Part shown: positions 26,001 to 31,631 of the stretch, in pieces
Layout of the letters: every line of letters starts with the position of its first letter
How positions within the stretch are numbered: the first letter of the stretch is position 1
Made by a program: the position numbers and the translations under genes
The notes under the pieces: model-generated
Databases searched by the model: none
What the model was told of the DNA's origin: nothing
Seen by the model: only the letters and a program-made list of their open reading frames with translations
From: Chlorokybus atmophyticus
Lineage: Eukaryota > Plantae > Mesostigma and Chlorokybus algae
NCBI GenBank assembly: GCA_009103225.1
Contig: RHPI01002119.1
Span: forward strand, 124,001-188,000
DNA length: 64,000 nt
Direction: 5' to 3'

Positions 26001-29000
26001 AACAGCTGTGAGCAACACTCGCAGCGATATCAGCAAACAAACCAACACATACCAGAAACTGAAGAAGGGCTGCCGGACTCGCTAGGTCTGCCCGTTGACT
26101 CGGCAGCAAGAAGCATGAGCGACAGCTGGTCCGCTGCTGCAGAAGTGCTCGCCCCGGCCATGCTGCAAGCCAATTGTTGCTGGTCAGCACGCTGTGAAGA
26201 GGAAGGCAACAAGTATGCTAAGCCCCAGTAAAAGCAGCACATTATAAGTGAACATACCTACGGCCTTCTGCAAAACTGGATGACCGCGATGCTTGCCATT
26301 GCCCATGTTGTTCCGCCTGATGTCATGTTGGTAAAACCGACAGCATGTGCAGGCACAGCAAGGACAATATATGCACACAGCAATTGACACACTTCAACCA
26401 AGCACTGCAAACGTATTGGTGCTACCTGTCCTTCACCATGTAGTGAGCCATTCTGCTGCCCCCGCTCCCGCATGAAAGCCTGGCAGATGATGGAACAGAT
26501 TAAGGTCAATTGACTTTAAAGCGCTGAAGTAGTAGCTGACCAAGACAACCTTCGCAAGGGCTTACACAAAGTCTTATACACTAAATTGCAACATACCTTC
26601 GAAGTCTCTTCACGCCTGGAAGCTTCTGGAGCTGCATCTGAAGCCTTCTGCTCTGATGTGATGCCTGGATTAGTCCAGCGGCGCTGTACAGGCACCTCGG
26701 CCTGCAGGTCACATGAAACACATCACTCAGATTGTTGCCATGTTGCGTAACCAGCAAAATCAGCTTGCTGGAGACTTACGGGCAAGCTCGCAAGCAAATT
26801 CGCGGAAGACGTTCGCTGCAAGTGACCCTCTGCACTGCGCAACTTGATCTTCAACTGAGCAATTTCAGAATCACGTGCGTTGAGGGCCAGCTGGACCTCA
26901 TCAACTTTCTCCGCCATCTCCCGCTTCAACCTGTTCACTGCGTTCCTGGACTCCTCGTCAAGCATGTCACATGTTTCTTGTGTGGCCTGCAAGGTGTAAA
27001 GGTCAGTGTCAGTGTCACTGCTGTCAGAAGGGATCCTTTACTACTGATATTTGACTAGGCGAGCCACTGCATGCTTGTAACACCTGAAGTTGCTGCTCCA
27101 GGGCCTCAATGCGTGTATCCCGCTCAACCACCGCCTGCCCTAGCTCGTGAAGAAGCTGTCTGGCATGATCCATCTCTGAGGCTAACGCAATCCGCTGGCG
27201 CTCAGCCTGCTCAAGCTTGGCTTCTTTTGCCATCAACTGCTGGGATGTCTCATTTAACTTGTCGTGCTTTTCTTGCAACTCCCGCTTCATTGTCTGGTTC
27301 TGCACAGACACGTGCATCGCAGGTTGGTGAGTGTGTTGGTGCAACCTCAATGGAAGTTGTGTGCCATGAACACATTGCATCACAAGCGGTGTCATTATTA
27401 TTAGAATGTGACCGAGGTCAAGTCATAGCAAGGCTTGTCTTTAACTATAAACAACCTACCTGCGTTCGCAGCTGCTTGAGTGAATCTCTGTTCGCTTGGT
27501 TGAGTTCCGTGTTGCGCGCGCGGCTTGCAAAAGACAACGACTGAGCTGTTTCATCTCTGTCGTTGAATGTCGGGCTTACAGTCACCAGCATGCAAGTCTT
27601 GGAATCACCACCTGCAGCATATGCGTAGTCTCATGTGCCAGTCTTGTATGCGAGTCCGTGTCAACCCATCTAAGAAATAGAATAGAAACCTCAGTCCAGT
27701 TAACAACGAGATTGAACTCACCAAGCGAATCCGACAAAAGGTGGGTCAGCTTCGAGTTGCGGTATGGCACATGCGGCTTCTTTGCAAGCAGAGCTGATAT
27801 CACGTCACCGAGTCTGTTGTTCCAAAACCAGCACACACACATTACAAAGTCTTCAATGAAGCTGAGCACACTCAAGGCATACAAGCCTAGCACCTCACGC
27901 ATGTGACCTGGACCATACATGCAATGCGCGAAAACTTACGCTGAAAGAGACTTGTTGATGTGAAGCGACTCGGTCAGTCTGTCTCCAGTAGCCTCACTCT
28001 TGCCTAGCCTTTCACTTCCCGCCATATCGACAAGGCTGAGCTTGCTGGTTTCAGCAAGGCCGTTGGCAAGCTTGCGGTGTACCAGCACGCCCATGACCCT
28101 GTAATCAAGCAGTCGGTCACATGATGACAATCATATCGTGGTTGAAGCGATGACGCTGCACTCACAGATGGGAGCGCGAGGAGCGATCATTGGACCTGGT
28201 TTGACCTACTGCTCTATTGGCAGAGCCCGTGGCAAACACTTTGTGAAACTCCTCCGGTGTTGACACCTTCACTGTTGACAAACCAGCGACTTCGACGGTA
28301 TCCAGAATGCCCACAATGTCTAACCTGTTGGCCCAAAATGAGAGTATCTTTATCACAAATTTCTGTCTGAGTATTTGAGAAACGGGAAGGTTGTGGTGTA
28401 ACGAAGCTAAGAGAGCAGCTTACTTCTCCTTTGTGTTCTGCTTGGGCACAAGCAGGTCATAAAGCTGCTCGTTGTATATCTCAAGCATGTACACAGAGAA
28501 GCTGAAGGCTTCCGGATCGGCAGACGCATTCACTAGTCGGAACAGCTCCTTGACGGCATTGTAATACACACCCCTGTCCTCTGGAGGCCCTTCCTGAAGC
28601 ACAATCCATGAGCAAGCTGGTAAGCAAAGCCGCATATCCATCATCGTCATGTCACTAACAGCCTTTTGTACAAGAGCCCCCCCCCCCTCGGCATCTAGTA
28701 ATGGAGGTGGCCAGCTTTTCAGCAGCTTGCACACTACCATTCCATCTCAGCCACGTCTGTGGTGGCTATCAGCATGACGCAAGTATCTCATGATTACAAG
28801 GGTCATGTGCAACATGTGACACTGCACATGACACAATATAGGAGTAAAGTGGACACCTGCACTACTTGCGGCCATGTCAATCATGTGACTGATTCAAGTA
28901 ANCAAACACCAATGGATGACATCCGTACCATTGTGTATGTTTTGCCAGAGCCTGTTTGTCCATAAGCAAAGATGCACACGTTGTACCCATCGACAAGAGA

Positions 29001-31631
29001 CTGCATCAACGGCTGGACATCGCCAAATATCTCCGCTGCACACCCGATATCAGTGTCAGCAGGCAACGTAAGGCAGACCTGCACAACTGCAAGTCTCGTC
29101 TATGCACACTGTCAGAGTTTAAAGCCCACATGTGCACAGGTCTATGCCCGCTTTAGAGCTGTATGGTTTGACGGCGTCCGTGCAGATCGTCATGCATGCC
29201 CGCACGCAATAACCTTTACATGTGTGTATCTGCATGTTCGTAACGACAATGCATGCATGTGGCTACAACAATCTACATGCACATCACGTGCAGCTGCATG
29301 CAGCGATGCAACATTACTGCAATCAAAGACTGTACTCCCACAACAGCATGATTGATTGTCTGGTACTGCAACCACAGTCATTTCGAACCATGCACAATCT
29401 ACCTATATGCTGACTGGCACCCACAGCGGCAGCAATGAGCGGAAGTGAGAATGACATTCGCCTGCTCGTTGGTACTGAATAAAGACGGCGACAATCCCAC
29501 AAAGAACAGGGCAATGTGAGATGTGAAGCTCGCACCTTGAGTTGATTGGGGACCATATGCACGATCAAGATCGAATTCCTTGCGCTGCAGTGCAACCACA
29601 TGTAAGTGTGGTTGCAACACTGGAGACTTCAATCTACGACGTCATGTCTTGGTACACAAATTTATCTTCGAGTTACTGATATACAGATGCACGCACCCCC
29701 ATGCGGGGAGGGGCGGGGCAGACCTGATGGTTGAGGTATGCGGGAGATCCAGGAGCTGCACTGAGATTGACAGTCTGCTCATCCAGGCAGCTGCATGCAA
29801 TACTCGACTTTTGCTCATCAGGACCCCTGATTGGCCGTATGCGGCAAAACACCCTTATGTTGCCTGCACAGTATGTGTGAGCGCGCAACTCAGTGAAACA
29901 AGCGCTCTGCTTGCATATAACCCCTCCAGTGTGTCCTACCATTGCGCTGTAATAGGTCATTGAACAGCCGTTGACGCTCCCGCTCCGAGCCCTCCAATCG
30001 CACCTTGTATGCTTCATGAATCTCTTCAGCTGTGAGAATGGTGACCAACGGTCAGCTAGCCAACACAGAGTAGTGCACCACACGAGTGCCCTGTAGAGAG
30101 CACGCGACCGAGCACATTACCTTGCGAGACTGCCGCTTGCATGGCATACTCAAGGTATCGTTCCATGCGTGACATCTTGGCCGAAGCATATCCTTGAAGG
30201 TCGACAACTTCATGACGAACAGCAGCCAGGTCAAGCTTGGCGGCCTGTTGACAACATGCGCAGTCAAGCAAGATAAAGTGAGCGCACAGAAAATGGAAGC
30301 CTGTTCTGCGGACACAGTCAGCCAACAGCCAAGCTGCCGTCTAGTTTGTGAGCAGTAGAGCATGCTTTGTCGAACATCCAAACAACAAACGACCTCCCCC
30401 CCCCAGCCCANNNNNNNNNNNNNNNNNNNNNNNNNNNNNNNNNNNNNNNNNNNNNNNNNNNNNNNNNNNNNNNNNNNNNNNNNNNNNNNNNNNNNNNNNN
30501 NNNNNNNNNNNNNNNNNNNNNNNNNNNNNNNNNNNNNNNNNNNNNNNNNNNNNNNNNNNNNNNNNNNNNNNNNNNNNNNNNNNNNNNNNNNNNNNNNNNN
30601 NNNNNNNNNNNNNNNNNNNNNNNNNNNNNNNNNNNNNNNNNNNNNNNNNNNNNNNNNNNNNNNNNNNNNNNNNNNNNNNNNNNNNNNNNNNNNNNNNNNN
30701 NNNNNNNNNNNNNNNNNNNNNNNNNNNNNNNNNNNNNNNNNNNNNNNGCCCCCACCCACCACCACTCACCACCACCTCTCGCCTGCCCAAGCCGCACCCT
30801 CCGCACACGCACACAACAACAACCATTACCATCGCATGCTCATAGAGGTAAGGGAGGGAGAGGTGAAAAGATCATCCCCCCAACCCCCGCCCTCACGCAA
30901 CCCCTTGTGCACTCTTGGGTGCGCATGTGGGACAACCTGCCACCCTTACGCAGGCTGCAGCTAAACAGAAGTAAGCTCTCCCCAACCCTCTCAACCACAA
31001 ACTCCAATATCCCACCTTCCCCAAGCAACACACACGCAATCGCACAGTCCTAACTGGACATGTCAAACACTGTACAGGAGAGTTAGGGGAAGCTGTGATG
31101 AGCGAGGGAGAGGGGGAGGGGGGGTAAGTAACACATCATTTTACCCTCTGTGCAGAGAGGTTGTGTCTTTGCCGTAAAAACACAGCAACGAATCACACTG
31201 ATGACAGCGGTTGTGCGCAGCCAGGGCCCAAAGGTGGTCGCAAAGAAGCAGGTGACTTGCTTCAACAAAGACTATTTCAACAAAGTAGGGCAGTCTGAAC
31301 TTTATGCAGTGCAGTCAGCACCAATGTGAGCAGCCGACAAAGACACCTGCACATGCTTGCCGAGGCCTGCCAAAGAAGTGGAGGAGTAATGGTGGTGGTT
31401 GTTGGCCTCATCGTCCAGATCTCCATGAAACCTGGGCGTCAGGGGAGTCCGTGGTGTGCTGGGGTTGCTACCTCCGCCGTTGCGCACAAGCCCAGCTCGC
31501 CGCTTACGGGCGGCGGCAGCAGCCCGCCTTGGGGAGCTTTCACCATGGACGCCATTGACGACGACCACAGGGGAGAGGGAAGGCCTACCTAAACCACCAT
31601 CCACAACCTCGCTGGGTGGCATCCCGCTCAT
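23080..31631 (-). CDS. KAC: KAC/KCA-type kinesin-14 (KIN14A/B, GRIMP-like; actin-based chloroplast movement family), multi-exon, spanning a gap
   Basis: Neck [24 protein letters not shown] and motor [54 protein letters not shown]-like tail motifs: [90 protein letters not shown]. Confidence 0.92.
25572..25731. repeat. Poly-C tract of about 160 nt containing an N, in a KAC intron
   Basis: Directly visible homopolymer. Confidence 0.8.
28687..28901 (+). repeat. Second copy of the 215-bp segment, in a KAC intron, bounded by a C-run and an N
   Basis: Identical to 22658-22872, preceded by a C-run and followed by N at 28902. Confidence 0.9.

Follow-up and report, generated by a model that had tools for sequence, protein, structure and literature searches.

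A KAC-type kinesin-14 with canonical motor motifs in the early-diverging streptophyte alga Chlorokybus atmophyticus

KAC is a clear plant case of a motor said to have lost both its track and its ATPase activity, although it is indispensable for the anchoring of chloroplasts and their photorelocation. The class is characterised by a C-terminal region that binds F-actin and by a part in the positioning of chloroplasts. Does this "dead" land-plant motor descend from a live one? An expressed KAC carrying all motor signatures makes the question testable, and such a gene lies in a stretch of 64,000 nucleotides from Chlorokybus atmophyticus (contig RHPI01002119.1, positions 124,001 to 188,000 of the forward strand; the window in the following). 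Judged by its sequence, the gene is the orthologue of KAC (also KCA or KIN-14A/B; class V of kinesin-14) in a streptophyte alga that diverged early. KAC orthologues in charophytes are already known. Database searches from Mesotaenium and Klebsormidium returned, among the matches listed (mostly land plants), KACs of Klebsormidium, Spirogloea, and Closterium, and none of Mesostigma, Chara, or Coleochaete.

All introns of the spliced gene model (Table 1) are of the GT-AG type, and internal stops are absent. The gene is expressed and spliced, as seen from a 4708-nt spliced RNA contig of a public run that matches 15 specified junctions of the model from 25850 to 30400 and contains one further junction. 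That of exons 2 and 3 is not among the 15, and that of exons 1 and 2 is matched by a loose end of the contig at 30247, which reads into the end of exon 1. Because the RNA joins exon 1 straight to exon 2, no exon is concealed in the assembly gap within intron 1. The contig also contributed one extra exon of 59 nt, and its length corresponds to the full model plus short UTRs; for exons 19-23, the support consists of homology and this length. The G run within intron 18, which is located beyond the region covered by RNA reads, is probably an assembly artefact or a homopolymer. An earlier sequence-only reading had placed the gene at 27560-29990, which covers most of the motor and leaves the tail motifs outside. 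The neighbouring ORFs held nothing related.

Table 1. Features of the Chlorokybus KAC locus (positions in the window).
Feature	Residues	Position	Strand	Basis or remark
KAC orthologue, coding sequence	1478 aa	23080..31631	minus	23 exons, 4437 nt; hand-built model
Exons 1-6		31631-31347, 30244-30121, 30029-29940, 29863-29724, 29584-29536, 29035-28929	minus	
Exons 7-12		28593-28424, 28324-28166, 28098-27940, 27813-27722, 27611-27460, 27299-27084	minus	
Exons 13-18		26986-26780, 26701-26597, 26479-26426, 26316-26258, 26162-26053, 25991-25846	minus	
Exons 19-23		25480-25207, 25113-24902, 24772-24503, 24419-24222, 24138-23080	minus	
Exon 1 region, Ser/Pro/Arg-rich	95 residues	31347..31631	minus	ATG-initiated ORF
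Assembly gap (N run)		30411..30747		within intron 1
KAC-specific N-terminal motif	aa 110-126	30152..30202	minus	aligns to DLQEYSNAK(L/I)xRxxRYL of KAC loci/proteins
Kinesin-14 neck-motor junction	aa 162-177	29832..29955	minus	sequence reading and alignment; intron inside span
P-loop GQTGSGKT	aa 255-262	28938..28961	minus	exon PF00225 E 1.8e-15
Switch I NDRSSRSH	aa 367-374	28168..28191	minus	sequence and alignment
Switch II DMAGSE (R next)	aa 399-404	28011..28028	minus	sequence and alignment
Loop 11 and helix alpha-4	aa 413-436	27789..27986	minus	alignment; intron inside span
Loop 12/alpha-5 microtubule-binding motif	aa 442-451	27744..27773	minus	Arg446 retained
Coiled-coil stalk (exons 12-13)	aa 510-650	26780..27299	minus	heptad-rich sequence
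Run of ~170 G (minus strand) with one N		25560..25730		within intron 18
11-residue tail block	aa 838-848	25361..25393	minus	alignment to KAC loci/proteins
11-residue tail block	aa 955-965	24917..24949	minus	alignment to KAC loci/proteins
Tail block ILDGWMDGL	aa 1006-1014	24641..24667	minus	alignment to KAC loci/proteins
C-terminal KAC domain	aa 1240-1356	23449..23799	minus	HMMER matches
15-residue motif within C-terminal KAC domain		23494..23538	minus	read from sequence

The predicted protein would begin with a probably disordered region encoded by exon 1, followed by the N-terminal motif of KACs. Neck and motor of the kinesin-14 type come next, then a coiled-coil stalk, and finally the KAC tail with a small alpha/beta domain at its end. 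The same domain order is found in Arabidopsis KAC1/KAC2 (KCA1/KCA2, KIN-14A/B) and other seed-plant KACs. The motor spans residues 167-500 of 1478, thus the N-terminal third, and is preceded by the kinesin-14 neck; in contrast to canonical kinesin-14s, its location is close to the N-terminus, and KAC stalk and tail make up the ~970 residues after it. Pfam PF00225 is matched by each of the five motor exon ORFs (E 5e-10 to 2e-15, scored per exon ORF), and further motor comparisons were made by local BLAST, MAFFT, and IQ-TREE. The P-loop, switch I, switch II, and loop-12 motifs named in the sequence-only reading were all recovered on the minus strand, and so were the tail motifs. The nucleotide pocket formed by P-loop, switch I, and switch II is canonical, as are helix alpha-4, Arg446 of loop 12, and the RxRP element (CRIRP). 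Canonical minus-end-directed kinesin-14s such as KIFC3, Kar3, and a Centaurea protein (P0225) match Chlorokybus in the nucleotide motifs, alpha-4, PYRNSKLT, and the GN neck junction, and KIFC3 is the best solved-structure match for the switch II exon. Loop 11 deviates: residue 417 is Thr, part of a KAC-wide loss of the basic residue, in place of the Arg/Lys of canonical kinesins (Centaurea kinesin-14, KIFC3, Ashbya kinesin-14, and OSM-3). For the stalk, Pfam gave weak matches to the rod proteins HAUS1 and crescentin, both under the curated cut-off.

The proposed identity as a KAC/KCA-type kinesin-14 was borne out by collinear alignments with other KACs and by a tail search that returned KAC proteins. 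Collinearity with the Klebsormidium, Ceratodon, and Theobroma KACs extends from residue ~90 to ~1350-1377, with E values of 2e-130 for Klebsormidium (P0227, residues 98-1377), 1e-172 for Ceratodon (P0056), and 1e-149 for Theobroma KAC1 (P0096), the seed-plant alignment running from the N-terminal motif to the C-terminal domain. In a tree confined to KACs and rooted on the Centaurea kinesin-14 as sole outgroup, the Chlorokybus protein branches as the sister group of the remaining KACs (99/96) and has a long terminal branch (0.88).

How unusual is the state of its motor? Among 256 KAC-family proteins compared, that of Chlorokybus is the only one to keep all four canonical motifs; 32 of 32 motif residues are canonical, whereas every other sampled lineage has altered some. 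In this, and in the first-branching position in the tree, the earlier proposal is supported. The Chlorokybus motor is also the most similar of 210 KACs to a canonical kinesin-14 motor (275 bits as compared to a median of 209), and at 45 positions it has the outgroup residue where fewer than 20% of the other KACs do. These positions cluster near the P-loop, switch I, loop 11/alpha-4, and loop 12. In the literature searched, we found no description of an intact KAC motor or of its repeated decay.

The other lineages differ from Chlorokybus in various ways. Klebsormidium nitens has SSKSH and PYANS, Spirogloea GPTSSGKS, ANRSH, and PHRNS, Closterium GKS, NKLSH, and DLASSE, and Mesotaenium KLRSH and PYYNS. 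In moss KACs (kinesin 14-V), PYRNS is replaced by PYDHS or PYGHS; Physcomitrium further has GQAGSGKS, SNRSH, and DLASSE, whereas Ceratodon keeps GQTGSGKT and SSRSH as well as, in one of two copies, DLAGSE. Although all three nucleotide motifs are thus retained in Ceratodon, KAC in general is regarded in the literature as being without microtubule affinity. The degeneration of SSRSH and PYRNS that the sequence-only reading ascribed to land plants holds for seed plants, with GQT[H/R/N]SGKT, SKFNVSH for NxxSSRSH, and PYENS for PYRNS, but not for the Ceratodon mosses, which retain SSRSH, or for liverworts, which retain PYRNS. Across the family, at least 2 to 8 changes fall on each motif, and the loop-12 Arg was lost at least four times. 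Motif loss is mosaic and repeated between lineages rather than one event or a single step from motor to pseudo-motor.

Land-plant KAC, including Arabidopsis KAC1 (PMC3472504), is described as being without microtubule binding or ATPase activity (PMC3472504; bioRxiv 10.1101/308775). For Chlorokybus, we lean slightly towards a KAC orthologue whose motor most likely binds and hydrolyses ATP, with the same motifs having decayed independently in other lineages. Motor motifs are necessary for activity and insufficient alone, and we infer catalytic competence from these motifs. Their residues would have been under purifying selection since the deepest streptophyte split, and binding and hydrolysis of ATP have for this reason most likely been preserved. 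The motor would probably bind microtubules as a minus-end-directed dimer, while the tail, like that of land-plant KACs, may engage actin or the periphery of the chloroplast. In other KAC lineages, the same motifs were lost repeatedly and independently. There is a more far-reaching version, which we put at somewhat below an even chance: the ancestral KAC may have been a working minus-end-directed motor that linked microtubules to actin or the chloroplast via the KAC tail, a state retained by Chlorokybus, and streptophyte lineages may later have disabled it on several independent occasions, when the positioning of chloroplasts came to depend on actin alone.

The strongest alternative, which we consider rather unlikely, is a KAC orthologue in which nucleotide would still be bound and perhaps hydrolysed, but solely to switch the conformation of the protein in a role related to actin or the chloroplast. 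Such a motor would do no work on microtubules, since its microtubule interface would have changed before the KACs diverged from their common ancestor. Indeed, 41 derived KAC-consensus motor positions (relative to one outgroup) are common to Chlorokybus and other KACs, among them T417, shared with at least 159 other KACs, so that this ancestor could already have differed in microtubule binding. Furthermore, the P-loop, SSRSH, and DLAGSE are retained in Ceratodon, in a family described as lacking microtubule affinity. However, canonical sequence is found in the kinesin-14 neck, in the INKSLSALGDVI stretch of alpha-4, and at Arg446 of loop 12, and such long retention of an Arg that was lost elsewhere is difficult to explain without microtubule contact.

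We regard it as improbable that the motor is catalytically inert through changes outside of the canonical motifs, for which the long terminal branch and ten private substitutions (e.g., F219L and R277N), at sites where the outgroup and more than 80% of KACs agree, could speak; the 32 motif residues are nevertheless canonical after a very deep divergence, in which other sampled lineages each changed some, and the gene is expressed and correctly spliced. That exon shuffling or an assembly error placed an ordinary kinesin-14 motor in front of a KAC-like tail, a scenario left some room by the tree, which covers KACs and one canonical kinesin-14, is hardly credible given that a single spliced transcript covers N-terminal motif, motor, and tail, that KAC-specific sequence flanks the motor on both sides, that the motor is 50-53% identical to its closest relatives, the moss KAC motors (Ceratodon and Physcomitrium), as compared to 44% to a canonical plant kinesin-14, that it carries KAC signatures such as TMEG and LTESLH, and that introns at residues 265/266, 428, and 459 coincide with breaks in tblastn matches to two KAC loci (L001, L005).

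The Chlorokybus KAC gains its interest from the graded series of partly decayed relatives with which it can be compared, comprising Klebsormidium, zygnematophytes, mosses, liverworts, and seed plants. Such a comparison makes it measurable through which substitutions microtubule binding and ATPase activity are lost, whether microtubules were crosslinked to actin by the ancestral KAC, and whether an actin-based function still draws on the nucleotide pocket. Moreover, lineage-specific, repeated decay offers a good example of how constraint can be relaxed in one part of an otherwise conserved domain.

Beyond the motor, the tails of seed-plant and Chlorokybus KACs have in common an 11-residue block, GNxxLAxL, DGWMxGL, and ARTADxTRxRYxRLY; unlike its seed-plant counterparts, the Chlorokybus protein has a more divergent tail and a long Gln/Asn-rich C-terminal extension. 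Its C-terminal KAC domain is predicted to consist of four strands followed by five helices (AlphaFold2 model, mean pLDDT 75) and shows 12 invariant columns in our alignment (A1), with identities of 33-40% to most homologues and 27-31% to two algal ones. A Pfam search assigned this domain to no family, and Foldseek returned nothing at E <= 0.001 for its fold; the best VIA-align match, the RGC domain of IQGAP3 (Z 4.5), is too weak to be considered. An HMMER search with the tail against 1.84 billion representatives yielded 22 matches, and those checked are KAC proteins or gene fragments, except for two repeat proteins (salmon RPTP-like P0014, and P0020) that are probably spurious. Five short metagenomic tail fragments (P0001, P0002, P0005, P0189, and P0200) were considered as new algal KACs and rejected, because their motifs resemble those of KAC genes of the moss, lycophyte, or seed-plant type, apparently split by a prokaryotic gene caller.

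The gene on the minus strand is a real, expressed, full-length KAC orthologue. When the ORF of its last exon was searched against 1.84 billion representatives (HMMER), only 22 matches were returned; those at full length belong to the KAC family (from Riccia, Crotalaria, Mesotaenium, and Selaginella, the last named KIN-14B), which bears out the KAC-type tail proposed by the sequence-only reading, and the short ones, where traced, are KAC gene pieces on eukaryotic contigs. The KACs of Klebsormidium (P0227; aa 98–1377, E 2e-130), Ceratodon (P0056; aa 94–1353, E 1e-172), and Theobroma (KAC1, P0096; aa 81–1351, E 1e-149) are collinear with the spliced protein and align along most of its length, whereas a canonical kinesin-14 from Centaurea (P0225) aligns over the motor only. 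All motifs quoted earlier were recovered on the minus strand; the span initially assigned to the gene (27560–29990) includes most of the motor, but the tail motifs fall outside it. Matches to Pfam PF00225 were obtained for five motor exon ORFs (E 5e-10 to 2e-15). A KAC-specific motif of 17 residues lies upstream of the motor and four tail blocks lie downstream; the tail is without a Pfam match over its entire length, in this and in other KACs. For the conserved C-terminal domain, an AlphaFold2 model from a 26-sequence alignment (mean pLDDT 75) predicts four strands followed by five helices. Foldseek returned no structural relatives of this model at E ≤ 0.001, and its best VIA-align match, the RGC domain of IQGAP3 (Z 4.5), is not convincing.

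Positions of KAC features and of the assembly gap in the window
Feature	Position	Strand	Remark
P-loop GQTGSGKT	28938–28961	minus	read in window sequence
Switch I NDRSSRSH	28168–28191	minus	read in window sequence
Switch II DMAGSE	28011–28028	minus	read in window sequence
Loop 12 motor motif (10 residues)	27744–27773	minus	read in window sequence
Tail motif (11 residues)	25361–25393	minus	read in window sequence
Tail motif (11 residues)	24917–24949	minus	read in window sequence
Tail motif (15 residues)	23494–23538	minus	read in window sequence
Conserved C-terminal domain	23449–23799	minus	no Pfam family
Assembly gap	30411–30747		within intron 1; G-rich flanks; no coding sequence hidden (RNA contig)

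The GT-AG exon model was built by hand and checked with contigs of four public runs placed on window 25850–30400. The predicted introns are absent from a 4708-nt contig of run X1 and from shorter contigs of a second study (X2); 15 of 15 listed junctions agree with the model, and a sixteenth, unlisted, was found as well. The contigs also corrected the model by an extra 59-nt exon (26316–26258) and by a start of the following exon at 26162 instead of 26191. At 30247 the loose end of the X1 contig continues with the last bases of exon 1, which shows that exon 1 is joined directly to exon 2 and that no exon is hidden in the assembly gap. The final model comprises 23 exons (4437 nt, 1478 aa), and the length of the X1 contig is consistent with this CDS flanked by UTRs of about 60 nt (5′) and 210 nt (3′). 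That the runs are RNA is our guess; the contigs are spliced, which genomic DNA cannot yield. Unspliced genomic pieces occur in a third run, X3. At two exon bases, 28217 and 28513, X1 departs from the window sequence (N358S and, in the Pro292 codon, a synonymous change), and its organism label differs from that of the DNA run matching the window exactly; the base differences look like strain or species-label variation. Intron 18 contains a run of about 170 G with one N (25560–25730, minus strand), just outside the read-covered stretch, which probably reflects an assembly error or else an extreme homopolymer.

In a set of 256 KAC-family proteins, each 900 aa or longer, all four canonical motor patterns occur together solely in the window's protein; the land-plant KACs in this set do not retain all four. 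The degeneration that the sequence-only reading ascribes to land plants holds for seed plants (SKFNVSH, PYENS) but is not uniform, as Ceratodon keeps SSRSH and Riccia PYRNS.

Motor motifs across KACs
Source	P-loop	Switch I	Switch II	Loop 12
Window gene	GQTGSGKT	SSRSH	DMAGSE	PYRNS
Seed plants	GQT[H/R/N]SGKT	SKFNVSH	mostly DLAGSE	PYENS
Ceratodon (moss)	GQTGSGKT	SSRSH	DLAGSE or DLAGCE	PYDHS
Physcomitrium (moss)	GQAGSGKS	SNRSH	DLASSE	PYGHS
Riccia (liverwort)	GQSGSGKT	degenerate	degenerate	PYRNS
Klebsormidium	GQTGAGKT	SSKSH	DMAGSE	PYANS
Spirogloea	GPTSSGKS	ANRSH	DLAGSE	PHRNS
Closterium	GQSGSGKS	NKLSH	DLASSE	PYRNS
Mesotaenium	GQTGTGKT	KLRSH	DLAGSE	PYYNS

In a tree of neck and motor from 23 KACs (IQ-TREE, LG+C20), rooted on the Centaurea kinesin-14 as single outgroup class, the window protein branches as sister to the rest of the KACs (support 99/96), followed by an algal grade and then land plants (100/97), which mirrors the species tree expected of an early-diverging streptophyte and agrees with Chlorokybus as the source; among the kinesin-14 classes, its motor is a putative class V member. 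At least five changes in the P-loop, two in SSRSH, eight in switch II, and four at the loop-12 Arg are required on this tree. Decay of the motifs is mosaic, lineage-specific, and repeated, which speaks against a one-step passage from motor to pseudo-motor; the earlier observation is confirmed and its interpretation partly supported. KAC1 and KAC2 are described as not binding microtubules and as having no detectable ATPase activity (PMC3472504), and charophyte orthologues have been known since a 2016 report, with Chlorokybophyceae outside that survey (PMC4853393). The window protein is a further member of this known family; its complete canonical motor is unusual for a KAC and, apparently, unreported: a full-text literature search found no paper on intact algal-KAC motor motifs or on mosaic KAC decay. 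Such a motor allows the question of how the KAC pseudo-motor arose to be put to the test.

Judged from its sequence, the nucleotide pocket, neck, alpha-4, and loop-12 Arg are all intact. Since 32 motif residues were kept across the deepest streptophyte divergence while each other sampled lineage altered some, we infer that purifying selection has preserved catalysis and, probably, contact with microtubules as well. On this reading the protein would work as a dimeric motor directed to the minus end, with a tail that would bind actin or the chloroplast periphery, as has been reported for land plants. Against the canonical motor it gives the top score (275 bits; median of 210 KACs 209). A column census with the Centaurea kinesin-14 as sole outgroup found 45 motor positions at which it retains an outgroup residue seen in less than 20 % of the other KACs, clustered near the P-loop, switch I, loop 11/alpha-4, and loop 12; the same census counted 41 derived KAC-consensus positions also present in it and 10 private departures where the outgroup and more than 80 % of KACs agree. 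Its loop 11 carries T417, where KIFC3, Ashbya kinesin-14, OSM-3, and the Centaurea kinesin-14 have Arg or Lys; this derived state, common to KACs, counts against a fully canonical microtubule interface. Alternatively, the nucleotide pocket may serve as a switch that does no work on microtubules, or features outside the motifs may leave the motor inert.

The short "hypothetical proteins" at two metagenomic loci (L001, L005) that match the KAC tail correspond to the last exon of plant KAC genes, annotated as separate proteins because a prokaryotic gene finder was applied to eukaryotic contigs; tblastn matches to these loci break where the window introns sit (aa 265/266, 428, 459), and the motifs of L001 are moss-type (SSRSH, PYDHS). 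The tail ORF (23080–24135, minus) also matched six stretches of a salmon [quoted passage not shown] repeat protein (P0014) and 12 of an unnamed 2244-aa repeat protein (P0020), all at its aa 116–185, which is probably a spurious or strand-rich resemblance. Two public gene models look mispredicted: that of Mesotaenium (P0018) repeats the N-terminal KAC motif and misses the first part of the motor, and that of the Centaurea kinesin-14 has two tandem motor matches (aa 264–671 and 668–921). Elsewhere in the window, an ORF at 17657–18331 (plus) has a FAD/NAD(P)-binding Rossmann motif at its N-terminus (PF13450, E 7e-12); it probably represents exon 1 of an unrelated gene for an oxidoreductase.
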